From Haliotis rufescens (lineage: Eukaryota): 64,000 bases of DNA. The stretch spans positions 14,880,001 to 14,944,000 of the forward strand of contig NW_025963846.1 of the NCBI RefSeq assembly GCF_023055435.1, in the 5' to 3' direction. Below are positions 36,148 to 54,469 of this stretch, piece after piece. The stretch's first letter is position 1. Every line of letters starts with the position of its first letter. Under the pieces are notes generated by a model. It was not told the DNA's origin. It saw only the letters and a list, made by a program, of their open reading frames with translations, and ran no database searches. Position numbers and translations under genes: made by a program.

Positions 36148-36290
36148 AATCTCACCCTCGTGTCTTTTGATATCAAATATATCAACACTCGTTGATAAAA
36201 GTGGCAAAAATCCTCGGCAAGCCTCGGATTTTTCCACTTTTATCAACTCGTGTTGATATATTTGATATCAAAAGACACTCGGGTGAGATT
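36148..36290. repeat. 143-bp near-perfect palindrome, probably the terminus of a non-autonomous DNA element
   Basis: Arms are reverse complements except for three CTCG/CTCG appositions and a 1-nt bulge. Confidence 0.93.
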
Positions 36291-37446
36291 CTCTATTTGT
36301 GTATCATGGAAAGATAAAAACAAATATCCCTATCTAACGTAGAGTAGTATATATTGCGAACGTGGACAGCACACCATAGACTTCATGTTACGTCAGTAGA
36401 TATTAAGTTGTATATTTCACCGTGGTGAAGACGATCACACCGCTGACACACGGTACCTGATACATGTCCCTTCCCCGAGTAACATATTTCGGCGATAGCG
36501 AATTGCTTTTCACCCCAAACAATGAATCTTCTGTCTTATTGATATGTTTTACAGTATATATTTAAACTTTAATAATTGCTGTAATGTGGATGGGTTGTGT
36601 TGCAAAACACNNNNNNNNNNNNNNNNNNNNNNNNNNNNNNNNNNNNNNNNNNNNNNNNNNNNNNNNNNNNNNNNNNNNNNNNNNNNNNNNNNNNNNNNNN
36701 NNNNNNNNNNNNNNNNNNNNNNNNNNNNNNNNNNNNNNNNNNNNNNNNNNNNNNNNNNNNNNNNNNNNNNNNNNNNNNNNNNNNNNNNNNNNNNNNNNNN
36801 NGCACACACATAAACACATACGTACACACACACGTACAAATAATTGGTTGAACGTCGATATCAACGTAGATGATATTTCTTTTAATGTGGCACCAACACG
36901 CTTCCATGCAACACACATGCAGTTGTGTCTAATATTGTTATTTATTTAGGACGCATTGATACTTATACTTATTTAATACTGATACTCAAACACTACAAAC
37001 TATAATAAATAAAGGTTTCATGATTATGCAAAATACGCCACGATGAAATATATCACTGTCTGTCCGAGGACGTGTTGGAGTTCCGTCAGTATTTGTGTTC
37101 ATTACAGAAAACTAATATGTACAGACCTGTGAACAAATATTTTCAGTAAACATTCCCCTTCCCACGTGGCGGCGAAGGCATTACAGTGATGGGAGCCGTG
37201 CATTCCCTGATGCAATTCCAAATAATTCCAACTTACAACTCCACTCGTCATGTGACGTTGTTGTTAAAACATCCAGGCAAGTTCAATCAAAAGCATTACC
37301 GTGACCTTCCAGTGGATGCGATTTCAGCTAACTGTTGCATAACGCTTACTCAAGATGGGCCGCCCGTCGGTCCAGATGGCCTGCCCTGGTACCGCAACAC
37401 GCTCACCCCTCCACGGGGGTCAGGATGTTGGGGTCAGATTCTTGTG

Positions 37447-37486
37447 TATTTATAACTGGCTGACACTGATGGACAATCATATTCAG
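37447..37486 (+). promoter_or_regulatory. Putative core promoter of tropomyosin A (TATA-like + initiator)
   Basis: TATTTATAA at 37447..37455 and TCATATTCAG about 31 nt downstream; same arrangement as copies B and C. Confidence 0.55.
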
Positions 37487-37635
37487 CTTCTGCCTCCAAC
37501 AGACAGGTCTATTGCAGCCTCAGTGATTTGTAGCATCGTTATCCTGTGTTGTTGGAGCGTTCTCGACAACTGTAAAACTTTTACTTACTATCCTTTTCAA
37601 TTGAGTCTTAGGTTTTTCAAAACTTCCTAGTAGCC

Positions 37636-38490
37636 ATGGACGCCATCAAGAAGAAGATGCTCTCAATGAAGTCCGACAAGGACAACGCACTTGAAAAATC
37701 CGAGATGTTGGAACAGCAACTTAAAGACATTGAGGAACAGAAGGCTAAGGTTGAGGAGGACCTCCACGATCTCCAGAAGAAATTCTCCAACCTCGAGGTA
37801 GAATTTGACAACGTCAACGAACAGCACCAGGAGGCAAATGCCAAGTTGGAGACATCTACCAAGAGAGTCACCGAGATGGAACAAGAGGTCAGTAGTACGT
37901 CCTCCAGGGCTACCATGTTGGAGGAAGATCTGGAGAGGTGCGAGGAGAAACTGCAGACAGCCACTATCAAGCTGGAGGAGGCATCCAAGGCTCAGGATGA
38001 GACGGAGAGGTCACGCAAAGTTCTGGAGAATAAGAGCAGTGCTGACGATGAGCGCATCGATCAGCTAGAAACTCAACTGAAGGACGCTAAGTATATCGCC
38101 GAGGAAGCTGAAAGAAAGTATGACGAAACTGCCCGTAAGTTAGCCATGACAGATTCCGATCTGGAGCGAGCTGTCACCCGTTTTGAGGCTGCTGAAACCA
38201 AATCCATTGAACTGGATGAAGAGTTGAAGGTCGTTGGAAACAACGTGAAGTCCCTTCAGATCAGCGAGCAGGAAGCTTGCCAAAGAGAGGAGACTTTCGA
38301 GGAGACCGTCAAAGACCTGACCCACAAGCTCAAGGAGTCGGAGCACCGCGCTGTGGAGGCTGAGAGGACAGTGTCCAAACTCCAGAAGGACATCGACCGC
38401 CTGGACGATGAGCTACTTACAGAGAAGGAGAAGAACAAGGCCATCCATGACGAGTTGGACCAGACATTCGCCGAGCTCGCCGGATACTAA
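37636..38490 (+). CDS. TPM: Tropomyosin, intronless divergent isoform (copy A), 284 aa
   Basis: MDAIKKKM start, 284 aa, C-terminus [20 protein letters not shown] motif. Single uninterrupted ORF with GCCATGG start context. Confidence 0.97.
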
Positions 38491-38880
38491 CTGTGAATGT
38501 GTACTACAGACAGGAAACTTGCCGGTGTTCTTCAAATCTCCAGTGGATATTTTCTGTAATGTGTCACTGATCTGTGAGACCCTGTGCTCAAACGGTAAAC
38601 ACTTTTTGTCTACTTTGTGTGATGCTTGTAATTGTCATCTCATGAGTCAGTGATGCCAGTGATTGCTTGCTCGGATACAATGGATACCACTGGAGGCCTG
38701 GTTGAACACTCAAGTTTATACTTGAAACTTCGAATCTCACATGAACAATATCAAGCTTTCTTTGATTTTAAATGTACCCATCCACTGCTGAATGTTGTAA
38801 ATAGCCAAAATTGTATCAACTCATTACAACTATTTATTATTTATACAGTAAGTCTACAGACATTCAACTGTTCATTTGTG

Positions 38881-38886
38881 AATAAA
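38881..38886 (+). terminator. Poly(A) signal of tropomyosin A
   Basis: AATAAA at the end of a 3'UTR of about 400 nt that is conserved with copy C. Confidence 0.7.
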
Positions 38887-39211
38887 ACCTGAAAGTCCAT
38901 GATACAAGTTGTTCATATATTGAATACGACCTGCCACCCAGTGTGACACCATTACTGTTCACAGCACCTTTTCACACACACGTGGCTTTTGTAGTTTCCA
39001 GGAAGTACTAACGGAAATCAATTTCTCGTCGGTGAGTGCATATTGTCTGCCGTTGTCAGCAACTTTACTGCAATATGCTGGATGTTATCCCCATCAGGTA
39101 AACCAGCGTGTAAGTTATTTTTTGGTCGGTAAATAAATAATTCATTGTTATATTTTAATTACTGTTTTAAGAAATCAAGTCAATGTTGCTGTTGTTTCTA
39201 TTACTTAACTA

Positions 39212-39386
39212 CAGTAAACTACGGTTATAACGAACACGCTTATAACGAACTGACGGATATAACGAACTTACTTTTGGGTCCCGACTATTTGCTGTTGTTA
39301 TACTGTATATATGCTGATAACGAACTACGGTTATAACGAACTAAAATTAGTAGTCCCTTTGAGTTCGTTATAACCGTAGTTTACTG
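39212..39386. mobile_element. Tc1/mariner-pogo-type MITE
   Basis: Perfect 24-bp TIR CAGTAAACTACGGTTATAACGAAC, TA TSD, internal repeats of ATAACGAAC. Confidence 0.9.
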
Positions 39387-41529
39387 TATACTACTTTATA
39401 TCTTTACTGAATATAAGTTTTTTAAATCTTGTCTAGAAACAAACTGGTCACTATTTTATAGGAACACTGTTTTTTAAGGAACACTCTTGTGGTCTGGAAA
39501 CTTCACTTTGAGTTGTGGTATGAGTAATTTCAAAAACATATTTAATATTTGACTCCAAAAACCAGAAACCAGAACATCGAGTATGTCATAACAGGGCATA
39601 TCTACAAAATATATCTGTCAGACAAGCACGTGTGGACACATGTACGTGACTTCAGAATACCCGATTGTGCTCATAGTGCATTAGTATTCCAATAATTATT
39701 ATTGAGATTATAACTGGGAATTTTCAATATAGTTTATAAGATAAATGGGGGCATGGAAATCTAAGTACAATGAACATATAATATTACAGAGCGTACTTGC
39801 TGTTATCAACGACTTCAATGAAGAGAACGCTCACATTCATCTTCCCAGCCAGTTTAAGGGCTCAGTAAAGCTTTCAAAATGTTTTATAGTAGACATGGTG
39901 GACGTTTCCGAATTTAAGGCTTCAGTGACAAAATCCCTTGTTTTGCAGGCCAACAATTTACTTTCCTTTGCATGTGTTTTTGACGGGTGCCACCGGTGCG
40001 GCAGAATACGCTTATCTTTTCGCGAACACAGGGGATCATCACTATTTGATAGTCATTCAAAAAACATTTTTATGATATTGTCGGAATCGCACAATGCAGA
40101 TTTCTTCTGATTATGGCAAGGGTTTTGTCGCTGTCATTGAACTTGTGGGTATTTAATATGCATTTCATGGCGCGCACGGAATGCCTCCCTGCCAACGCTT
40201 AGAGTACCCACCTTCAATAGAAACACACATAGAATTGAAAAAAGAGTATTCTTGTGATATATAGTTATGCATTAGGTTAAAGATATATATAATTCAAATG
40301 AAGCCCAGAAAAAATGCTGAATTTGAGGGCTGAGCTGAGGCAATCTAGACTTGCCAAATCATTCTAGGTTCGAGTTAGATTCACTTTTTATTTTGCTCTC
40401 TTATGTCTGTGAGATAGACTAGAAGACCTATGACAAACATGTTATGCCTCTGTGAGTTTGCGGCGACAACTACTTGGCAACAGAGGACAATTGGGAGACC
40501 CCTTACATCCCTTATACCTGGTAGCAGTGACCCACTATGCAAACCAACGGTACCGCTATTTCCAGAGATAAGTCACAGTATCTCACGTTTATCGGTGATA
40601 TATCTAAATACCACGAACCATTTGCGGCAATCCAGGAATCTGAACAATGCTAGCATCACTCTTGAATCACACATGTAGGTGCCTATGTGCAATGACACTG
40701 TGTGAATATTCCTACACGTGTAACAGGACTGGTTATTAAAGTGATGGTCCTCTGTAATCTTTGCTGCAACTGTTTGTTTGTGTTACAAAATCCGTTTTTT
40801 TTTGTTCCTTCCAGTCTTCGTTTTGTTACATAAGGGGCCGGCAATTTGATATTCTGTACTGAATCAGCTACAGCTGCAAAACCAAATATTTTAACTGACA
40901 CTTTGAGTCTATATATTTCTTTTGAACAAAACACCTTGCAACAATGTTTTTTGTCAAGCATTTTCTTGGCCAATAATTTCGTCGATAAAATCCCAGATCC
41001 CGACCCCCAGAATATCAAATGACTGGTCCCTAAGTAAGTGGGGGTGGGGCGGGGGGTAGTAGTGGGTGGAAGGGGTGGGGGTGATGGTTTATAACTAGCA
41101 AACCGACAAATGGTGAGCAGTGGAACCCACACACACACAGGGAAGACTAAAGCGCCCACTTGTGTCGTGCTAAATCATGAAGGGACATTAGAAGTAGTCC
41201 AAGTGGGTTGTAAACCAGCCGACTTCACCTACTTTAAGAATACTCTTGATATTGCGGTGTAAAATATGTGTCTTGCCTAGGATAGCCCAGTGTTGCTTAT
41301 CGAAAAAACATTAAACGTCAATGCCAGAGTATAACACATCTCCATTAATTGCCGACACAGTTCTCCGAAAATCAGTGAGGACACCAGGTCAGCCCTTTAT
41401 GTACTGATTATGTATCCATAATGACATCTAAGATATGTGTGTGAGAGTGTGAGTATGTGTGTGTGTAAATGACGCATCAGTTGCATTTCGGAATTCGTTT
41501 ATTTGACTGATATGTTCTTTGCAATGAAC

Positions 41530-41690
41530 ACTGACACACACCACACATACCACACATACACACACACATCCGCGCGCACACACACACACCGCACATACCA
41601 CACATACACACACATACACACACACACACCGCATATACCACACCCACAAACACACACACTAGCACGCACGCACGCACACACGTAAAAGGC
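41530..41690. repeat. Imperfect (CA)n microsatellite
   Basis: Direct observation. Confidence 0.9.
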
Positions 41691-44064
41691 AAAATAGCTG
41701 TGAAAAGTTTATGAATTATATGAAAATTATAAGTATTTTATATGATTAATTTCTTTTAGGGTCAAAATTATACATAATTTGAATTGAAATATCAGCAAGC
41801 ATAAACAATTACTCTATTTGTATATACACATAATCAAAATTTGATTAAAGAATAACATTTTAAATGTATGTAAGTTGATATGTTCGTCAGTAGGAAAGGG
41901 AATGATATCTCAGTGTGAAATATGCACCCCATGGACACCCCCCCCCCCCCCCCCCCCCATACACACACACACACACACACACAAAACAAGTATCATAATC
42001 AGGGCGAATATGGGATTCATACCCACGGTCATCGGAACCTGGCATATCTACGGCACATAGCTCTGTACAGCGAATTGCGGCGCCTTGCACGACTTTAATA
42101 TAGAAGTGTTGGAGTTGTATCAATGGCAGTCCAATAGCCTGTTGTGGTTAAAACGTTCGCTCTTTCAATTCCCAACACAGGTGAAATGTACGTGTGCAGT
42201 CAATTTGCCATTTCTGTCCTCCACGTCATACAAAAAGATATTAAAATGTGGTACTTGTTGTTGTCCTGCCTGTGGCTCTCGGCATTAAGGGACTAATACA
42301 AGGCTTGGTCGGGTCACTCAGTACNNNNNNNNNNNNNNNNNNNNNNNNNNNNNNNNNNNNNNNNNNNNNNNNNNNNNNNNNNNNNNNNNNNNNNNNNNNN
42401 NNNNNNNNNNNNNNNNNNNNNNNNNNNNNNNNNNNNNNNNNNNNNNNNNNNNNNNNNNNNNNNNNNNNNNNNNNNNNNNNNNNNNNNNNNNNNNNNNNNN
42501 NNNNNNNNNNNNNNNNNNNNNNNNNNNNNNNNNNNNNNNNNNNNNNNNNNNNNNNNNNNNNNNNNNNNNNNNNNNNNNNNNNNNNNNNNNNNNNNNNNNN
42601 NNNNNNNTTGATGCGTCACATTTTTATGACCCCAATATGCATTTACACGGCACCAAGCTAAGCCAAGATAATTATTTGGTACAATGTAGTCTGTCATGTA
42701 GACCCTGAAAAAATATATCCATACATCTGTAAAACATATCTCAAAATTGTCGAAATGAGTTTACACAAATATGTCTGTCACCAACATCATAACAAAGGTT
42801 ACTCGTGAAGAGCAAATTCCGAACATGAAATGCCTAAATATATCTATACCATCCATCTTCACGAGAATGCAATAACATTGCTACGTGTACCAGAACATAT
42901 CAAGTCTATTGTAAACATGCATAAGATATATGCGGGGGCGGGGCGGGGTGGGGAGTTTGGGGGGTGGGCGGGGAAGTAGGAGGGAGAGGTTCGAGTAGGG
43001 GCTGAAGTAAGACTATAAGTGAAGAAGACCCTCTACCCCCTGGAATTATCAGCTGCAGGTGGTATGCACATGTGTTCGTGGGTGATGCATTAAGGTAATG
43101 AATTCTTTACGGTTCAAGAGAATCGAGGATCTTGCTTACTCGTGGTAATGATTATTGCAGCACCGATTGCATAAGATGAGTTGGCTTCTCCTTGTTAATG
43201 CCCACATCTGACCGCCGCGTGGGGTGTTGTACGACCGGCGTGCGGGGTGTTGTATGACCCGCCGTTTTTGCAGGGTGATGCGCAGCATCAGTGTCAATCC
43301 ACAATCATAAACTTCAGATTTATGTGTTGGTGATGGGCGTGTTAGTCGTGCATGGATACTGATTGGCAAAGAGATGCATGTGTTTATTGCCATTGGTTTA
43401 GGCAATCTAGATTCCTAAGAATGTTTAAAGAAATGAGCAGTCTTGCAGTTCCTGAACCATAATATTTTCCCTTCTGCCCATCCCTTACTGTAGTGCCACT
43501 GCCCCAAATGAAGCAAGTCTAGATATTTTTCCACAGGTTCCGATATCTCCCATCTCACTGGGGCTCCTTTTCAATTTGAATGTAGTTGGTTGTTTCTATC
43601 AAAATTATATTTTTTCAGTGACTAAGCGTTTGTCTATTCACATTTTATCAACATGCATTTATCATCTTTCTTCATCGAAATACGTTCTAGATCCGTAAAG
43701 ATCTACCTCGATATATGTATATGCAATAACGTCATTTAGTACATCCGGATCCTACACGGGTAGTCATAAAGATTACAGCAACGCCATCCAGATAACTAAT
43801 AACATTAACTTAGACAAATAAAAGCGACAAAACCCTTTCCATATTCATGGAATAATCTCTGCAAAAAGCAGAGTTGATTGTACGATTCCGACTATATCAC
43901 GAGCATACGTTATGAATCATCATCAAACAGTGATGATACCACCCTTCCAAAGTAAAACACATGCTTAAACAACACAAATGGATAAACTGGTATTGAAAAT
44001 ACCCCTGTCAAACACCACAGCAAAGGGAAACATCGTGACAAACGAAACATATGAAACAAAATGG

Positions 44065-44070
44065 TTTATT
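44065..44070 (-). terminator. Candidate poly(A) signal of tropomyosin B
   Basis: AATAAA about 490 nt after the stop, followed by a T/G-rich tract on the minus strand. Confidence 0.5.
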
Positions 44071-44560
44071 TCAAAAATTATACTTCAGCACATCGGTCAG
44101 ATCATTAAAAGTTGCTATGTACATGGTTGAAAGAGCGGTAGTGATGTTCCACATACTGCCACGTTAGCTGTGACAATATATCAACACAAGTACTTCATGT
44201 ATGGTTGCAGCATATGGAGAGAAGTCACTGACATCCTTCGGAGTCAGTAACGAGCACATATTTTCCTGGTAGAAACGCCGCTCGGAGTATAGCCTTATGT
44301 CACCTGTTGACAAGCACTATTGTAAAGCACATTGTTAGTTCAACCGTTTTGGGTTTATGTGTGTATAGTTGGCAAATGGAACAATCAATATTACGGCAAG
44401 ATTGTTGAAATAAATATAAGCATAAATTAACATAAATAAGTGACAATTTTCCTATTCACCGTTATGTCCAAATCCAGTATCCGACGAGTCACAGTATAGA
44501 AAATATTCATTAGAAGTGTGAAGAACACTGACATCTTTCATGGATGAAATACACATTCAG

Positions 44561-45415
44561 TTAGTATCCGGCGAGCTCGGCGAATGTCTGGTCCAACTCG
44601 TCATGGATGGCCTTGTTCTTCTCCTTCTCTGTAAGTAGCTCATCGTCCAGGCGGTCGATGTCCTTCTGGAGTTTGGACACTGTCCTCTCAGCCTCCGCAG
44701 CGCGGTGCTCCGACTCCTTGAGCTTGTGGGTCAGGTCTTTGACGGTCTCCTCGAAAGTCTCCTCTCTTTGGCAAGCTTCCTGCTCGCTGATCTGAAGGGA
44801 CTTCATGTTGTTTCCAACGACCTTCAATTCTTCATCCAGTTCAATGGATTTGGTTTCAGCAGCCTCAAAACGGGTGACAGCTCGCTCCAGATCGGAATCT
44901 GTCATGGCTAACTTACGGGCAGTTTCGTCATACTTTCTTTCAGCTTCCTCGGCGATATACTTAGCGTCCTTCAGTTGAGTTTCTAGCTGATCGATGCGCT
45001 CATCGTCAGCACTGCTCTTATTCTCCAGAACTTTGCGTGATCTCTCCGTTTCATCCTGAGCCTTGGATGCCTCCTCCAGCTTGATAGTGGCTGTCTGCAG
45101 TTTCTCCTCGCACCTCTCCAGATCTTCCTCCAACATGGTAGCCCTGGAGGACGTACTACTGACCTCTTGTTCCATCTCGGTGACTCTCTTGGTAGACGTC
45201 TCCAACTTGGCATTTGCCTCCTGGTGCTGTTCGTTGACGTTGTCAAATTCTACCTCGAGATTGGAAAATTTCTTCTGGAGATCGTGGAGGTCCTCCTCAA
45301 CCTTAGCCTTCTGTTCCTCAATGTCTTTAAGTTGCTGTTCAAACATCTCGGATTTTTCAAGTGCGTTGTCCTTGTCGGACTTCATGGAGAGCATCTTCTT
45401 CTTGATGGCGTCCAT
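44561..45415 (-). CDS. TPM: Tropomyosin, intronless (copy B), 284 aa
   Basis: Differs from copy A at only 3 residues (L25F, V204M, V240A). Confidence 0.97.
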
Positions 45416-45527
45416 GGTTACTTGGTTGGTGGTGAGTCGTTAATCTAAACGGAAAGTACTTTATACTACAAAGTTGTAGAGATAATCTCAAGGAGCGGAC
45501 TGTAGGTTGTTGACGGCGGGAGGCGAA

Positions 45528-45568
45528 GACTGAATATGCCCTCTCGTTCAATATCGGTCTGTTTTATA
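45528..45568 (-). promoter_or_regulatory. Putative core promoter of tropomyosin B
   Basis: TATAAAA at 45568..45562; CATATTCAGTC with the A at 45537, 31 nt downstream. Confidence 0.7.
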
Positions 45569-45722
45569 CCACTTACTGACCCCCATGTGGTATTATAGAC
45601 AGAGATGGTAACCGCCATCTTTGAAACGACCCCCTGCCACGGCGCCAGTGTACCTCTCCCTGTACCGGCGGGGGGTGCATCTGTTTGAGCATGTGCTCTG
45701 CCCGTGTACATCGTCTTATGTC

Positions 45723-48345
45723 AGAAAGTATTTTGATGGAAATAATTAAATACTCAAAACTTGGCCACATAATCCTTAGAGGGGATATCAATGTCCTCGT
45801 AGTATCTGATGATGGATGCATAGATAATAGTAATGGTATCCACTTGCCTGATCTTCCTACTGACATAGGGTTCATCCTTCATACACCAGTGGGCACTAAA
45901 TAATTTGTTGAACACCAAATGACAGTGCTTCTTGTGAAGCACACATTGATGCCTTCTATGCCGGTATATTATCTTCATTAATATAGTGTCAACAGAAGCA
46001 GGCAGACTTGTATATAATCTGCCTAAAACCCTTGGCATGATAAATAGGTTTGAACATTATTAAATAAACTTTGGTTATCTAAAAAATATAAAAGGTGCAG
46101 CCAGTACAAGGGTGTAGACAGCAAGTGGATCTCTTAATCAGGATTTCTTAATCCAGAAAATAATGACCACATTCCAAACTGTAACGCTATTTTAACTACT
46201 CAATCAATGCTGAAAGGGTCGTGCAATGTGTTTGATAATTAAAAACAAATAAATCTAATTACAGAGGCATAGCTGCACGCAGTTGTATGGGAAGTTATTA
46301 GTTAGATTATTAATGGAAGAAATGCCAAACACATGGACAATAACTCTATGCATGACATTTCACAGTCTGGATTTAGAAAACAGACCTCTGATATCAGATT
46401 TGTACTCAGAACCTTATTTGTCTCAGCAAAATCGCTAAAAAGAAGTTGTACACATGTTTTGTTAATTTCTAAAAGGCATTTGACACAATAGATAGATCAC
46501 GTTTGCCATCTAAACTTTTATTAGTTGGTGTTTCCAGGAAGGCAATTCATATTAAATATTCGCTTCATGCTGACTCGTATTTCATATAGAGTAAATACCA
46601 GTAAGGGAGTGTCACAAACATTCCTATCTGATATTGGATGAGACAGGGATGTATCCTGTTTCCCACTCTTTTCAACATATTTATACACGATCTTTAGCAA
46701 CACCTTAATTCTAAGCAAAATAGTGTAACTCTACATGATCTCAACATTGTCACTGCTTGCGGGTGAGTTTCTATTATTCGTAGACAGCCCACCCAATCTT
46801 GATACTCTTCGGGGGCACGGGTGGCCCAGTCGTCTAAGGCGCCGCGATTCGCTGTGCAGAGTTGCGTCCCTTCGGACACGCCAGAAACCTATGATTGTGG
46901 GTTCGTATCCCGATTCGCCCCGATTATGTTTCTAGGTTTGTCAGCACCATACCCGTGCTCGTGGGTTTCACCTAAGTGGTAAACGTCTGAGACCTGCATC
47001 ACTTCGGGCTTTCCTCCCACATTAAGCTGACACGCCGCGATATAACTGTAATACTGTTAAAAGCGGCGTTAAACCCAACTCACTCACTCACTCACTCACT
47101 CACTTGATACTCTTCGTGTCTTCTGCATTAATAAAAAATAAATGGAGATAAATATAAAGTTATTATATTTGGCATATTCAGTAATTTGAATGCAAAATAT
47201 TAACGGTAAAACATTGTGTGATACAAATCATTATAGTTATTTTGGAATAACGTTTGATCTATCTGGAAGGTTCATCTGGAAGGCGCTACATTATTGTTTA
47301 AACAAGGATTGGGAGCATACCACAAACTCCAAACTACCATTTTCAATCAAGATATTCCAGTACATCAAGCATGAAAACTATTCAAATCATTCACAGAACC
47401 TATCATTTAATACATCAATGCAATTTGGGGCATTAGTTCAATTCTATAAAACAGATTAACATTTTTACTCCTGAAAAACTTAAACTTCGATTCTGCAAAT
47501 TCAGTGTTTGGGGCCAGTAGAACTACACATAACTGGTCATGCAGAGCAGGGTAAGGTTAATATCCTCTTCTATGTAGTACAATAGCTAAAATGGTAAATC
47601 ACCACCATATTACCACCTCAGACAATATCATTCTCCGAAACGCTTTTGCTAAAAGTAAATCCCGAATCCTTAGAAGAATTGTTTATTTGCTGCTGGTCAA
47701 ACGCTACATTTTAGTTACTCAGCATTAACGTCATTATTTGTAGTTGATCCAACCATCCAACAGAAATTCCAAACCCTTAATATACATTCTCTTTCAGATG
47801 CAGAATCTATGGCTACTGGCTCAGGAAAAAAATAAGAACATATAGAATAGTTAAAAATGATATTAAGTTAGGAACTCTTTAAGAATATCTCAAGAAGATA
47901 TCGTGTTAAGTTGATACTTAGTGACCATTAACTTAAAAGTGAGCTTGGTACACGCACAAAACCGCCTACACCAATCCATCAAAGACTCAACTGCTCAACT
48001 TCACATCAGTAGTAAATGATCTTATTCACTGTATAAAACATAGCCAAGATTGAATAGTATTATATAATATTATTAGCTAACGAAGTTTCCAAAATAATAT
48101 ACTTACATTGAGTTGGCCTGTTCCAACATGCCCTCAATTAATACCATTTGTTAACATGTTTATAATTTCAACCAATAAATCCTAATACATCAACATAACC
48201 ATCTTTAAAATATATTGTTTTATTCTTGTGTTTTATATACGCATTTTTCATGAGTTTGTGTAAATGTAAATTGTAGCTGTTTACATTTACATCTTTTATT
48301 TAAGAAATGTATTGCAATATAAATGATCTTATCGTATTTTATCTG
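45723..48345 (+). mobile_element. Decayed RTE-X-like LINE inserted upstream of tropomyosin B
   Basis: Remnants of GDIN (45781), SGFR, KAFDTIDR, RQGCILFPTLFNIF (about 46640) and SDH. Absent from the homologous flank of copy C. Confidence 0.75.
46812..47102 (+). mobile_element. SINE family B, full length
   Basis: 14-bp TSD CTTGATACTCTTCG at 46798..46811 and 47103..47116; (ACTC)n tail. Confidence 0.93.
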
Positions 48346-48659
48346 AAGACGGAATTTTCTTACGGAGAAAGTATACATCAAACGTTGCGCCATTAATGGA
48401 GATTATCATAGAGCTATTAAGTAATTACCATCTCATCTTGTGAACATGCGAAGATAAGGTAGCATCTTGCGACATCTGGGTTACATGACTGTGCACTTTC
48501 ACCTTCATGGTGGGGGGCGGGAGTGGGGGAAGGGTTTGCGTGCACCCCCGTGTTTCACACTGAAACGGGAGAAGCTTGCAATGTTATCACGTTTCATATG
48601 CATATATTCATCAGTAATCAGTTTAGATTTTGGTATTCGTAGGTTTGTACATGTTTGAA

Positions 48660-48960
48660 GAGCAATAGATCATGCTCTTTCTTCCAACATTACAAAGAGC
48701 GCCATACAACTCTTGCTCAGAAGTTGTTTGATCAAGGTTACAACTATCCTGGCCTCAGTAAACTTTGAACAAGTTTTATGTCAGACATGTGGAGGACATT
48801 TCCATGCAATTACCTATTTTGACTTGTACCATATGCTCCCGGTTTTTTTTAGGTGAACAATTGACTTGTCTTTGCATGTGTTTGTGGCGGGTGCCAATGG
48901 TGGGCAGCATGCGCTCACCTTTTCGCGAACACCTGGTGTCATCACTATTTGATAGCGATT
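48660..48960 (+). mobile_element. Penelope-like retroelement 3' fragment (tentative)
   Basis: RHTTLAQKLFDQGYNYPGL...NKFYVRH, followed by GGGTGCC...CTTTTCGCGAACACCTGGTGTCATCAC. The same motif recurs at about 6690(-), 13230(-), 28440, 39985 and 51650..51830. Confidence 0.55.
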
Positions 48961-49007
48961 CATAAACACATGCTAATGATACAGTCGGAGTCAGAAATCG
49001 AATATTT

Positions 49008-49217
49008 CTATGATTGCGGGTTCAAATCCCGGTTCGCCCCGATTATGTTTCTAGGTTTGTCAGCACCATACCCGTGCTCGTGGGTTTCACCGAAGTGGTA
49101 AACGCCTGAGACCTGCATCACTTCGGGCTTTCCTCCAACATTAAGCTGATACGCCGCGATATAACTGGAATACTGTTAAAAGCGGCGTTAAACCCAACTC
49201 ACTCACTCACTCACTCT
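49008..49217 (+). mobile_element. SINE family B, 5'-truncated
   Basis: Match from the B-box to the (ACTC)n tail. Confidence 0.88.
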
Positions 49218-49466
49218 TATGACTATAGAAAAGGTTTTGTTGGTTCTGTTTGATTACTTTGCCTGTGGAATGTGATGTTGATGCATCTGGTATACAACTT
49301 CCAATCAGAATGTGATTCCTTCTAATTGAATGAATCTTTAATTCCCAGACATTCAGAAATAATGTATGTGATTAACAGCTCACACTATTCCTTTTACACG
49401 ACTATGCCATCTTCCTTGAGAGCGGGTCGGTGGAAATCTAAAACTATTACTGATGATGGAATATGG

Positions 49467-49632
49467 AGTGAGTGAGTGAGTATGGTTTTACGCCGCTGTT
49501 AGCAATATTCCAGCAATATCACGGCGGGGGACACCAGAAATGGGCTTCACACATTGTACCCATGTCGGGAATCGAACCCGGGTCTTCGGCGTGACGAGCG
49601 AACGCTTTAACCACTAGGCTACCCGACCGCCC
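49467..49632 (-). mobile_element. SINE family A
   Basis: Full length; TSD GATGGAATAT(G/A)GAG. Confidence 0.92.
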
Positions 49633-50749
49633 GATGGAATATAGAGCTGAAAGTAAAGGATTGAAGTCTGACAAAGCACCCGATATAGATGCTGTCCCTC
49701 CTGATTTTTATGAAAATACCATGGACATGTAACCGTATTTAACCATATATTTGATATTGGTGAATTTCCAGAAGATGTTGATCCCGCTGTAAAACAAGGT
49801 GATGTTGAAAACGTCCACAATTATGTTGTACTTTTACTATTAAATAATTTTGGTAAAATTTTCACATCAATTCTAGAACTGAGACTAAGAACTTTAATTG
49901 AAGTCAACGATACGGTGGATTAGGAAAAAATTACTCTATAACTGATCAAAGTTTCGTTCTCTTTGTTAGAAATATCTTAGAAAACCAAACCATATGTTCT
50001 AACATTATATTATTGATTATAAAATAAACGTTCGATCATATGACAGAAATAAGTTATAACTGAGAAGAAAAGGAAACTATACCTCACAGTTGATTTGATC
50101 ATATGTTTGATATTCATTTTAAAATATCTTAAGTTAGCGATACATATAGTCAGCACTCAAAGAATATTTCTACATGGTTTCATTTTTTAAAATAAAATTT
50201 TACTAAAGAAACCTTTTTAAAATAGCAAAGATTTGCATTATACACAATGGCTAATGTGTACCTTACACGTTATATCTGTGACAATTCATAAATTTGCTGC
50301 TTTGGGAACAAATTTACAACATTTCAGACAGGGTGGGGTTCATGTGGTTGCAAATTAATAATTATTTCTTACCCCAGACTCCATTGAACCAGTTAATGTT
50401 TACACAAAATTACCCTGCCACAGATTACTATGTACAAACTGTTGCTGGGTGATGGTTAATCGTCTACAACAATTGTTTCAATTTTCAATTACATAAAAAA
50501 CAAAAGCGTTACATCTTTACGCCTCAATTTACGTCCTAGTCGACAGGGGCATTCATGGGGAAATGTTTACTAACCTTTATAATATGTATGAAATTAACAA
50601 AACCTGTGCGAGGGTGGGACATGTGAAAACATAAATTTAAAAAACCAACACAGGTGTTATACAAGGTTGCATGTTTAGTCCAGTTCATTATATTTTTTGT
50701 TATGAAGGGACATGGATTAAGTGGTAATTTTGTACAAACAACAACCATT

Positions 50750-51600
50750 TATTCATTTTTGTTGATGATGTAACTATTGTTGATGATAGTATGACTGGAC
50801 TCCATAGTAAAATAGATGTTTCAGAATCGTATTGCCAACCATTGGGACTAGAGGTTAATTTCGACCAAAAGAGTAGTTTTAGAAATAGTGGTTACTTAAG
50901 AACTATGTAGCAACGGTTGAATAAAGGTTCCCAAGTTAAAGTAGCACCATGCTCTAAATATCTTGGCATATTATTTTCTTGAAGACCTGTCTGGACTAAA
51001 CCTTATGATACTCTATCTCTTCAGGCAAGAAAAGCATCTACCCCAGCCTTCATCATGTTGAAACATACTCTCGACCAATATAACTGCTGCTAAAATATTT
51101 GAATCAATGCTGCTCCTGTTATTTTTGCTATGTTTCAGAAATCTGGGTATACACCTAGAGAAAAAATATTGAAAAGGTTCACCTCAAGTCCTTTAAAAGG
51201 TATATTTCTGTTGCAAAAAGAAGCTCCACAAATGCTATTTGGGTGAACTTGGAAGAACTCCCCTATGTGTAAATTATTATAGTCGTTCTGTTACATATCG
51301 GTGTAGATTCGGTGAAAATAGATATCCTGGAAGCTTTGGACGACAATGGTAAAACAAAATAAGATTACCATTGTTTCAAACTGGGTTTTCATGTGTATAC
51401 ATTTCTCTAAACTGTGGCGATTTAAATTGTATCATGGCTTTTTTTAACAACGATAAAACGATTTCAAAACTGTCATTTAATGTAACAAATTCGTCTCTTG
51501 CATGTATAAACGCCACTCGTACCATAGAGACCTATCTATTTAGCCCCGGAAAGAGATCTCCGAACAACTTCATGTTGATTTGTCCATTTAAGAAACAAAG
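50750..51600 (+). mobile_element. Decayed RTE-X-like LINE fragment
   Basis: FVDDV (about 50758), FRNSG, KYLG, EKVHL and GELGRTPL (51241). Confidence 0.75.
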
Positions 51601-52002
51601 AGAGAAAGCAGAGAAATTATATGAATGAATCACTGTAAATCAGTGTTGGCACCAGGTGTTCATTGAAAGGGTAAGCATGGCCTGTCCTACCGGTAGCACC
51701 CGTCATGTCTTTGTAAACATGGGTGATGTTAACCGTTAGAATCCAGTGGTGGTATAACTGTTGCTACTGGTAGGGTAGGACATGCTTACCATTTCCGCGA
51801 ACACCTGGTGTCATCACCTATTTTTCAGTGATCCATTCATATAGCTTTTACCGCTATTTTTCCTTTTACACTCAATGCAATCTGTTTCGTCGTATAATCG
51901 AGACTGGTTATTCTCTGGTGTTGACGTTGTATATTTATACACCAGGTGGAATGCCAGGTGGAATGCCAAAATATGAAAAACTTGTTTTATGGACGTGCAG
52001 GT

Positions 52003-52008
52003 TTTATT
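52003..52008 (-). terminator. Poly(A) signal of tropomyosin C
   Basis: AATAAA homologous to 38881..38886. Confidence 0.7.
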
Positions 52009-52399
52009 CACAAATGAACAAACGCATGTCTATTGACACACTGAATAAATAATAAATAGTTGTAATGAGTTGATACAATTTTGGCTATTTACAACATTCA
52101 GCAGTGGTTGGGTACATTTAAAATCAAAGAAAGCTTTATATTGTTCATGTGAGATTCAAAGTTTCAAGTATAAACTTGAGTGTTCAACCAGGCCTCCAGT
52201 GGTATCCATTGTATCCGAGCAAGCAATCACTGGCATCACTGACTCATGAGATGACAATTACAAGCATCACACAAAGTAGACAAAAAGTGTTAACCTTTTG
52301 AGCACAGTGTCTTATAGATCAATGTCACAGCATTAGAAAATATCCACTGGAGATTTGAAGAACACTGGCATGTTTCCTGTCTGTAGTACACATTCACAG

Positions 52400-53254
52400 T
52401 TAGTATCCGGCGAGCTCGGCGAATGTCTGGTCCAACTCGTCATGGATGGCCTTGTTCTTCTCCTTCTCTGTAAGTAGCTCATCGTCCAGGCGGTCGATGT
52501 CCTTCTGGTGTTTGGACACTGTCATCTCGGCATCCGCTGCGCGGTGCTCCGAGTCCTTGAGCCTTTGAGTCAAGTCTGCGATGGTCTCCTCAAACGTCCC
52601 TTCTCTCTGGCTAGCCTCCTGCTCGCTGATCTGAAGGGACTTCATGTTGTTTCCAACGACCTTCAATTCTTCATCGAGTTCAATGGTTTTGGTTTCAGCA
52701 GCCTCAAAACGGGTGACAGCTCGCTCCAGATCGGAATCTGTCAGGGCTAACTTACGGGCAGTTTCGTCGTACTTACTTTCAGCTTCCTCGGCGATATGTT
52801 GAGCATCCTTTAGTTGATTTTCTAGCTGATCGATGCGCTCATCGTCAGCAATGTTCTTGTTTTCCAGAACTTTGCGTGACCTCTCCGTCTCATCCTGAGC
52901 CTTGGATGCCTCCTCCAGCTTGATAGTAGCTGTCTGCAGTTTCTCCTCGCACCTCTCCAGATCTTCCTCCAACGTGGTAGCCCTGGAGGACGTACTACTG
53001 ACCTCTTGTTCCATCTCGGTGACTTTCTTGGTCGACGTCTCCAACTTGGCATTGACCTCCTGGTGCTGCTCGTTGACGTTGTCAAATTCTACCTCGAGGT
53101 TGGAAAATTTCTTCTGGAGAGCATGGAGGTCCTCCTCAACTTTAGCCTTCTCCTCCTCGATGTCTTTAAGTTGCTGTTCCAACATCTCGGCATTTTCGAG
53201 CGCGCTGTCCTTGTCAGACTTCATGGAGAGCATCTGCTTCTTGATGGCGTCCAT
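52400..53254 (-). CDS. TPM: Tropomyosin, intronless (copy C), 284 aa
   Basis: Intact ORF; 29 amino-acid differences from copy A by manual count. Confidence 0.97.
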
Positions 53255-53396
53255 GGCTAGTTGGAAGGTGTTGTGGCGTAAAATGAAACGGAAAGTAGTT
53301 TAGATTACAAAGTTGTAGAGATAATCTTAACAACCGAGCGACGAATTGCTTATTCAGGTAAGAACTGAGAGCGGACCGTTGGTTGTTGACGGCGGA

Positions 53397-53437
53397 AAGT
53401 GAATATGGCCTCTCGTTTAATATCGGTCTGTTTTATA
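53397..53437 (-). promoter_or_regulatory. Putative core promoter of tropomyosin C
   Basis: TATAAAA at 53437..53431 followed by CCATATTCAC; homologous to the copy B promoter. Confidence 0.7.
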
Positions 53438-53916
53438 CTACAGACTGAACCTCATATGGTATTATAGACAGAGATGGCCAGCGCCATCTTTGAAACGACC
53501 CCCTGCCACTGGGCCAGTGTACCTCTCCCTGTACCGGCGGGGGGTGCATCTGTTAGACCATGTGCTCTACCCGTGTACATCGTCTTCTTATATCATTACA
53601 TGGATATTTCTTACGGAGAAAGTATACATCAAACGTTGCACCATTAATGGAGAATATCACAGCGCTATTAAGTAATTATCATGTCCACCTGTATACATAC
53701 GAGGATTGGGTAGCACCCATGCGACATCTGGATTACGGAGCGGCTGTTTTCAATGTCCATTGGTAAAGGGTCGGGTTGGGTCCCCGGGGCGGATTGGGTC
53801 CCCGTGGTTCACACTGAAACGGGAGATGTCTGTAATAGTATATGTTTTCTGTTTCATATATTCAGTAGGTTTCTGTTTTTGTAGGTTTTGTGCATGTTGT
53901 ATGTGAAGGTGTATCT

Positions 53917-54040
53917 TTGTTTGTTTGTTGTTTAACGCCGCACTCAGAAATATTTAAGCTATATGACGGCGGTTTATAAATAATCGAGTCTGGAACAGAC
54001 ATCCCAGTGATAATGATCACGAGCATCGATCTACGCAATT
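53917..54040 (-). mobile_element. Family C retroposon, 3' part
   Basis: GATCGATGCTCGTGATC...GCGGCGTTAAAC(AAAC)n. Confidence 0.8.
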
Positions 54041-54469
54041 GGAGTTGGTGTATGTGGTGTACCACTTCCATGCTTCTAATCCAGTAAATCTTCTTTAATT
54101 CCCACTCATTCAGAAAAATACATTTGATTTACAACTGAGAATATTCCTTTTATACGATTATATATCTTTAAGACTGCCCCCGTGGTCTGGGGGATAGAGC
54201 CTCTGGCGTCTGGCCGGATAGAGGAAGGTCGGTGGAGACGTTAACCCCAATTCACCTCACCTCACCTATACGTTCAGAAAGTAAGCACTTCAAAGTCGAA
54301 AACAAACAAAATATACAAGCAAACTCGAAAATTAAAACCTGACATCTGTTTTATAGAACAACAAACATAAATTTAACTTATATTTATTCTATTCATACTA
54401 TGTTATACACCACAGTATAATCATTTCAGCATGAAAAACCCAGTTTTTTTCTTTGCCGTAGATTTAGAA

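Follow-up and report, generated by a model that had tools for sequence, protein, structure and literature searches.

Three Intronless Tropomyosin Open Reading Frames

The window analyzed here is a stretch of 64,000 nucleotides (nt) from the abalone Haliotis rufescens (contig NW_025963846.1, positions 14,880,001 to 14,944,000 of the forward strand), and it contains a group of intronless sequences that encode tropomyosin. The listing of its open reading frames (ORFs) holds exactly three uninterrupted ORFs of 284 codons that begin with ATG, together spanning 15.6 kb (herein referred to as c1, c2, and c3); an earlier reading of the bare sequence (the original prediction) had placed three uninterrupted 855-nt ORFs within 16 kb, and they lie exactly where it put them. 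The coding sequences (CDSs) are as follows:

37636-38490, plus strand: c1, intronless tropomyosin CDS, 284 amino acids (aa) plus stop (from ORF, Pfam, and structure alignment)
44561-45415, minus strand: c2, intronless tropomyosin CDS (from ORF, Pfam, and pairwise comparison)
52400-53254, minus strand: c3, intronless tropomyosin CDS (from ORF and Pfam; exact protein in NCBI)

All three match the Pfam family Tropomyosin (PF00261), with E-values of 2.3e-75, 1.1e-75, and 7.4e-69 for c1, c2, and c3 and scores of 232-255 bits against a curated cut-off of 38.6, and the c1 protein is colinear with residues 1-280 of solved Tpm1 chains (6x5z_O and others) without insertions or deletions (indels; E = 1.4e-61). 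The CDSs of c1 and c2 are nearly the same (98.8% identity; 10 of 855 nt and 3 aa differ), and c3 is separated from c1 by 61 nt and 29 aa differences and from c2 by 59 nt and 28 aa differences. We consider it probable that all three ORFs function as genes and encode full-length 284-aa tropomyosins, a judgment made jointly with the whole reading, developed below, in which they derive from a retrogene.

The Parent Gene and the Loss of Introns

Searching the genome in all six frames with c1 returned nine matches, namely the three copies and six exon-sized hits at a single locus (G000:C1:40363913-40395366). This locus is the sole multi-exon tropomyosin gene found in the genome and lies on a different contig from the copies, which are on contig C68; it is the intron-containing parent whose existence the original prediction had supposed. 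Its structure was determined by exon-by-exon tblastn and inspection of splice sites, and its exons were compared with the copies singly, with counts summed over exons rather than taken from a joined parent model. The canonical path comprises nine exons (aa 1-38, 39-80, 81-125, 126-164, 165-188, 189-213, 214-234, 235-257, and 258-284) separated by eight GT..AG introns (at aa 38/39, 80/81, 125, 164/165, 188, 213/214, 234/235, and 257/258). In addition, the gene has three alternatives for exon 4, two for exon 5, and two for exon 6, as well as an internal alternative first exon (G000:C1:40370866-40371030), and its isoform X10 corresponds to the NCBI protein P0122 (Haliotis rufescens), which carries the non-muscle exon set. 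The regions of the alternative exons are:

G000:C1:40380327-40381492: parent gene, alternatives of exon 4
G000:C1:40383594-40383805: parent gene, alternatives of exon 5
G000:C1:40386682-40386929: parent gene, alternatives of exon 6

Downstream of the parent gene (G000:C1:40400761-40404937) lies a tandem array whose repeat period is about 415 nt, and in which a short ORF motif occurs at least ten times.

The copies c1, c2, and c3 lack all eight parental introns, and every junction is exact and without an indel. Among the alternatives of exon 4 they fit E4b best (nucleotide identity of 0.68-0.70, vs. 0.52-0.53 for E4a and 0.63 for E4c), and among those of exon 6 they fit E6b best (0.68-0.71, vs. 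0.51-0.53 for E6a). The fit to E4b and E6b holds at both the nucleotide and the amino acid level and points to one spliced long isoform, as expected from the original claim that a copy of the long muscle isoform had been made. Because all introns were cleanly lost and the exon choice is that of a single isoform (the only two grounds on which we base this conclusion), retroposition is the most likely origin of the intronless lineage; a spliced long "muscle" messenger RNA, made by the abalone lineage's one tropomyosin gene with multiple exons, would have been retroposed once, long ago.

Two observations count against a retroposed origin. No poly(A) tract and no target-site duplications were seen at 38936, at 51952, or beyond the 5' ends, and alignment of the sequences around the copies with those around the parent gave scores within the range of shuffled sequence (400 nt on the 5' side and 2.5 kb on the 3' side), leaving no detectable homology in the untranslated regions (UTRs). 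The missing scars of retrocopying are weak evidence, however, because saturated divergence would erase them. Both observations are what one would also expect if the lineage began as an old DNA-level duplicate that lost its introns stepwise or through partial conversion mediated by complementary DNA, and the later copies did indeed spread through DNA duplication. We nonetheless regard such an origin as unlikely: the introns are absent from all eight positions with exact junctions and no indel, no alternative exon has been kept, so that the sequence is that of a single splice form, and the copies and the parent are on different contigs.

Age of the Intronless Lineage

Divergence at synonymous sites between the parent and the copies is saturated over the nine canonical exons (proportion of synonymous differences, pS, of 0.84-0.85), with nonsynonymous divergence (dN) of 0.17-0.19, and the origin of the lineage is accordingly old. 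At 0.84, the pS of this comparison is above the 0.75 expected at random, and GC content at third codon positions is 0.58 in the parent and 0.65-0.67 in the copies; the two values together hint at different codon preferences in the parent and the copies.

Comparison with other taxa places the split of the copies within the history of the parent gene. In exons 2 and 3, which are variable, it is the abalone parent that the copies most resemble: in exon 2 they match it at 32 of 42 positions, vs. 26 for Bulinus, and in exon 3 at 32 of 44, vs. 23-28 in eight outgroups; residues S86 and T88 are common to the parent and the copies only, when set against eight outgroups that include Gigantopelta. We classified 281 positions across the parent, the outgroups, and four intronless proteins (c1, c2, c3, and an orthologue from H. 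cracherodii). Of these, 166 are constant throughout; all four intronless proteins have changed at another 38, and only some of the four at a further 23. At 6 positions the change is confined to the parent, the copies holding the outgroup state, and at 10 the parent and the copies agree with each other but not with the outgroups, nine of these depending on Bulinus as the single outgroup. The remainder consists of 36 positions with ambiguous outgroups and 2 of other kinds. The copies thus split off after the parent had gained several lineage-specific residues, yet long ago, because the parent has since changed at 6-8 positions. An age in the order of 10^8 years can be suggested, a rough figure that depends on clock-like change and on assumed split times, as opposed to a calculated date.

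The H. cracherodii orthologue of c3 is a "tropomyosin-like" protein of 284 aa (XP_071082741.1; P0001) that differs from c3 at 6 aa. It carries the residues that distinguish c3 from c1 and c2, and the split of c3 from c1/c2 is therefore older than the split of the two species. Protein searches returned no orthologues from more distant abalone or other snails, a negative result that says little, because the same searches missed the canonical 284-aa abalone tropomyosin too.

Purifying Selection and Accelerated Change

The copies are under purifying selection. Between c1 and c3, dN is 0.045 and synonymous divergence (dS) is 0.208, giving a dN/dS of 0.22 (Fisher P = 2e-8); the ratio is likewise 0.22 between c2 and c3 (Fisher P = 3e-8) and 0.10 between c1 and c2 (Fisher P = 8e-4). 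The original prediction had named a dN/dS near 1, together with a lack of expression, as an outcome that would speak against it, and the observed range of 0.10-0.22 lies well away from that value.

At the same time, the copies have evolved much faster than the parent. In a relative rate comparison with Bulinus as the outgroup (255 sites), 56-61 changes are unique to the copies and 8 to the parent (P = 2e-9 to 2e-10), and with Mytilus, Batillaria, and Ostrea the corresponding counts, 39-44 vs. 2-4, give a similar result. The copies have changed about seven times more than the parent. The acceleration extends to the most conserved parts of the protein: exons 5, 7, and 8, which hardly vary or do not vary at all among snails, an annelid, and a nemertean, carry 7, 4-9, and 6-9 replacements in the copies, respectively. 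Exon 5 is invariant in the comparison of snails with annelids and nemerteans, and the copies have replacements at 6-7 of its 23 positions. The copies are thus far less constrained than the parent, yet constrained and expressed (see below). Positive selection in the segment aa 214-249 was considered and rejected; synonymous and nonsynonymous differences both cluster there, which is better explained by patchy conversion.

Flanking Sequences, Promoters, and Gene Conversion

The regions that flank the three CDSs are shared among the copies in a mosaic fashion, and are composed of the following:

37300-37635, plus strand: c1 upstream region, weakly alignable to the promoter and 5' UTR of c2 and c3
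38491-38936, plus strand: c1 3' UTR, common with c3 (92%), with AATAAA at 38881-38886 (+391)
45416-45717, minus strand: c2 promoter and 5' UTR, common with c3, with TATAAAA at 45568-45562 (-153)
44488-44560, minus strand: c2 proximal 3' flank, the sole 3' part alignable to c1 (76%) and c3 (80%)
53255-53586, minus strand: c3 promoter and 5' UTR, with TATAAAA at 53437-53431 (-183)
51952-52399, minus strand: c3 3' UTR, with AATAAA at 52008-52003 (+392)
38382-38490 (c1), 44561-44669 (c2), and 52400-52508 (c3): identical CDS ends

According to the original prediction, each gene had both promoter and poly(A) motifs. This is borne out for AATAAA, which follows all three CDSs (the next one after c2 is at +491), and for TATAAAA only in c2 and c3. 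The case for a promoter at c1 is weakened on three counts: the alignment places TATTTATAA where c2 and c3 have TATAAAA, no exact match to TATA[AT]A[AT] occurs within 600 nt upstream of c1, and blastn finds no match of the c1 upstream region to c2 or c3 beyond -13.

Homology between c2 and c3 extends for about 300 bp upstream of the ATG, and that between c1 and c3 for 446-448 bp downstream (92%); homology between c1 and c2 is confined to the interval from -10 to +73. Mismatches between c1 and c2 number 10 in the 855-nt CDS vs. 17 in 70 nt of 3' flank (Fisher P = 6e-14). Over the final 109 nt of the CDS the three copies do not differ at all (P of about 0.01 by simulation), which may mark a tract of conversion or else reflect constraint on the region of C-terminal overlap. 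Elsewhere in the genome, the 346 nt upstream of c3 are found only at c2 and the 448 nt downstream of it only at c1. A promoter carried in by a transposable element was rejected on the ground that the upstream and downstream stretches occur at these loci only.

The flank mosaic shows that the gene was duplicated as DNA, its promoter and 3' end already in place, and that gene conversion came afterwards; it does not point to three retropositions. The new gene, equipped with a TATA promoter and a poly(A) site of its own, was copied twice in this way, and conversion later made parts of its coding region uniform, leaving the CDSs of c1 and c2 nearly the same. The synonymous divergence of c1/c2 from c3 (0.20) is near the divergence of the c2 and c3 flanks, unlike that of the c1 and c3 flanks, which suggests that c2 converted c1. 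The proposal of an "amplified retrogene family" therefore holds as regards duplication, there being three loci with shared flanks, and has to be qualified in that the family numbers three copies only and grew by DNA duplication and conversion rather than by repeated retroposition.

Transcription

We compared the sequence depth of four sequencing runs (X1, X4, X5, and X15) over the region 51000-54400, divided into 30 bins; the runs belong to sets that are probably RNA from two organisms (X1-X4 and X5-X8) and DNA from another (X15-X20). Coverage by the DNA run X15 extends to every one of the 30 bins, with a depth of about 30-50 outside repeats and about 30-47 over the unique flanks. In contrast to this even coverage, X1, X4, and X5 have a depth of 0 over the unique flanks 51000-51455 and 53394-53849 and of 76 to about 10,000 over the c3 unit, which corresponds to the following feature:

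51996-53381, minus strand: extent of RNA-like contigs over c3, colinear with the genome and hence unspliced

Beyond it, slight coverage appears for X5 in 51456-51569 (depth of 3.82) and for X4 and X5 in 54078-54400, where most bins are at 0; the only other stretches covered in X1, X4, and X5 are high-copy repeats at 51570-52025 and 53850-54077. Zero depth in the flanks together with high depth over 51996-53381 is the pattern of RNA. The contig ends agree with the motifs in the flanks: the lower ends, at 51996 (X1) and 52001 (X4), fall just past the AATAAA, and the upper ends, at 53381 (X1) and 53376 (X4), lie about 50 nt downstream of the TATAAAA, with colinearity across the ATG and every former intron position.

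The contigs also contain more than one type of sequence. A 431-nt 3' UTR contig of X1 has 2 differences from c3, and a 440-nt 3' UTR contig of X4 has 21, bearing the c1 letter at 14 of the 17 variant places listed in the 3' UTR; within the CDS, 15 of the 18 listed places carry the c1 and/or c2 letter, and position 52889 fits c2 only (40 of 162 variant places were listed). From the pattern of coverage, we infer that c3-type and c1-type sequences are transcribed, and the expression that the original prediction called for is thus seen in contigs that cover the c3 unit and in c1-type sequences as well. Several circumstances temper this conclusion. The organisms of the runs are possibly other than H. 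rufescens, the label "RNA" is a guess such that the nature of the runs is itself deduced from the coverage pattern, the contigs carry no information on strand, transcript end, or level, and transcription of c2 depends on the single diagnostic letter at 52889.

The two high-copy repeats named above adjoin the c3 unit on either side. Their depth in X15 ranges from tens of thousands to millions (summed) and is high in the RNA-like runs too, and the homology between c1 and c3 stops where the repeat at 51570-52025 starts.

Copy Number and Assembly

Four runs of undetermined bases (N runs) occur in the window, and two of them, 36611-36801 and 42325-42607, bound an island of 5.5 kb on which c1 is situated. 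The second is:

42325-42607, no strand: N run, intergenic, between the 3' ends of c1 and c2, beside a repeat

It begins 3.8 kb beyond the c1 stop codon and lies 1.95 kb beyond that of c2, and is crossed by no ORF or reading frame, the sequence there being non-coding. Because the island is bounded by N runs, the distance and orientation of c1 relative to c2 and c3 (convergent with c2) depend on the scaffold.

This arrangement, along with the 98.8% identity of the c1 and c2 CDSs, would be compatible with an assembly artefact in which alleles or haplotigs of one or two genes were set side by side at gaps and so mistaken for three genes. We judge an artefact of this kind to be extremely improbable. 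The flanks of the three copies do not line up with one another, c1-c2 homology ending at -10 and +73, and it is on this account that alleles and haplotigs were rejected; moreover, both c1-type and c3-type 3' UTRs are present in the RNA-like runs. In the DNA run X15, depth over 52699-52892 is 59.8 for the c1/c2-type contig vs. 23.7 for the c3-type contig, a ratio that fits two near-identical copies plus one, although depth is a weak measure. The three loci accordingly did not collapse into alleles of one gene, an outcome that had been named at the outset as one that would overturn the prediction.

Predicted Properties of the Proteins

Relative to the parent protein, the copies are 72.6-74.7% identical over the 281 positions read, corresponding to 71-77 replacements. 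The protein motifs quoted in the original prediction were right, and the copies differ from the parent of the same genome at the places it had named. Replacements affect surface and core positions that are otherwise invariant in canonical lophotrochozoan tropomyosin, in agreement with its claim of divergence at normally conserved residues.

With residue 1 assigned to heptad position a, following the usual convention, the a and d positions are hydrophobic or alanine, and the a/d strings of c1 and c3 are close to that of the parent. Substitutions show no preference for particular heptad positions (19 of 82 in the core vs. 53 of 199 elsewhere, P = 0.65), and those in the core are mostly conservative. 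The ends of tropomyosin serve in head-to-tail overlap. In c1 and c2 the N-terminal nine residues are those of the parent, with one change in c3, and exon 9 is identical to the parental exon at 23 of 26 positions. Because length, an unbroken heptad pattern, and both ends have been kept, the capacity to form a coiled coil and a head-to-tail polymer on actin should have been retained; the products would form parallel coiled-coil dimers that polymerize head to tail along actin filaments.

Two features of the proteins speak against this prediction of preserved function. One is the even spread of substitutions over the heptad, which also fits a plain relaxation of constraint. The other concerns the tropomyosin signature, given as L-K-[EAD]-A-E-x-R-A-[ET] at aa 232-240 (PMC9858658): the corresponding region reads LKESEHRAV in c1, LKESEHRAA in c2 and in the H. 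cracherodii protein, and LKDSEHRAA in c3, such that all four intronless proteins depart from the signature at positions 4 and 9 (2 of 7 fixed positions).

The broken signature and the unbiased substitutions, together with a rate of protein change about seven times that of the parent, raise the question of whether the copies are transcribed processed pseudogenes, or idle copies without a protein function, that have stayed open by chance and gene conversion. Against this stand the intactness of three ORFs and of the H. cracherodii orthologue despite saturated synonymous divergence from the parent, the dN/dS of 0.22 (P = 2e-8), core positions that are still hydrophobic, and the high k-mer depth in the RNA-like runs; we consider nonfunctional copies to be very unlikely. 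If the genes are functional, the pattern of replacements makes it likely that they represent a paralogue with altered partner or filament specificity, rather than a second dose of muscle tropomyosin. As a tentative extension, we hypothesize that they could constitute an old lineage specific to abalone or vetigastropods, born by retroposition and freed from the constraint on exons 5, 7, and 8, in which a gene-converting cluster builds distinct actin filaments (e.g., in gametes, larvae, or non-muscle cells); we would not put this forward as the expected outcome.

Relation to Known Tropomyosins and Retrogenes

The nearest known relatives are the automatically annotated "tropomyosin-like" proteins (see below) and canonical abalone muscle tropomyosin, the product of the multi-exon parent, which likewise has 284 aa and the same ends and is colinear with the copies; a tropomyosin complementary DNA from H. 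discus hannai is described in PMC9858658. In contrast to the canonical gene, the copies are intronless, lie on another contig, have their own TATA promoter, and encode proteins that do not conform to the signature. As to whether the intronless type had already been described, it has been annotated automatically and we found no paper on it: NCBI protein P0121 is identical to c3, and both P0121 and XP_071082741.1 are automatic annotations only. The exact proteins of c1 and c2 are absent from the protein collection. Among the papers searched, nothing turned up on intronless or retrocopied mollusc tropomyosins, and PMC3342872 and PMC11601488 had no bearing on the point.

Animal retrogenes in general show intron loss, a new chromosomal site, a new promoter, and accelerated protein evolution. 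The copies resemble functional retrogenes of this sort in each respect (all introns lost, new site, new promoter, and faster protein evolution), and a functional retrogene that was later tandemly duplicated is a kind of gene already known; to our knowledge, and within the papers searched, no functional tropomyosin retrogene family has been described. Taken as a whole, the locus probably holds a tropomyosin paralogue that arose long ago as a retrogene and grew into a small cluster of three genes subject to gene conversion.

Bilaterian tropomyosin diversity usually arises from alternative promoters and mutually exclusive exons of few genes. In the cluster described here, one isoform would have been removed from the splicing system, supplied with its own promoter, and left free to diverge, providing a natural experiment that could separate the residues needed for the coiled coil from those needed for muscle-specific partners. 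The locus would also display, within one small region, retroposition, DNA duplication, and gene conversion acting one after another. Tropomyosin is the main shellfish allergen, and the copies differ from the canonical abalone protein by about 26%; should they prove to be an old specialized lineage, they would add unrecognized tropomyosin variants to the diversity of abalone allergens.

Other Features of the Window

The original prediction had situated the cluster next to IMMP2L. This adjacency was not upheld, as a search of the 64-kb window found no Peptidase_S26 (IMMP-like) exon; the nearest Peptidase_S26 hits are two exons at G000:C68:15079063-15082442, about 135 kb past the end of the window. 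Upstream of c1, at 36148-36290, a stretch of 143 nt matches its own reverse complement at 89%.

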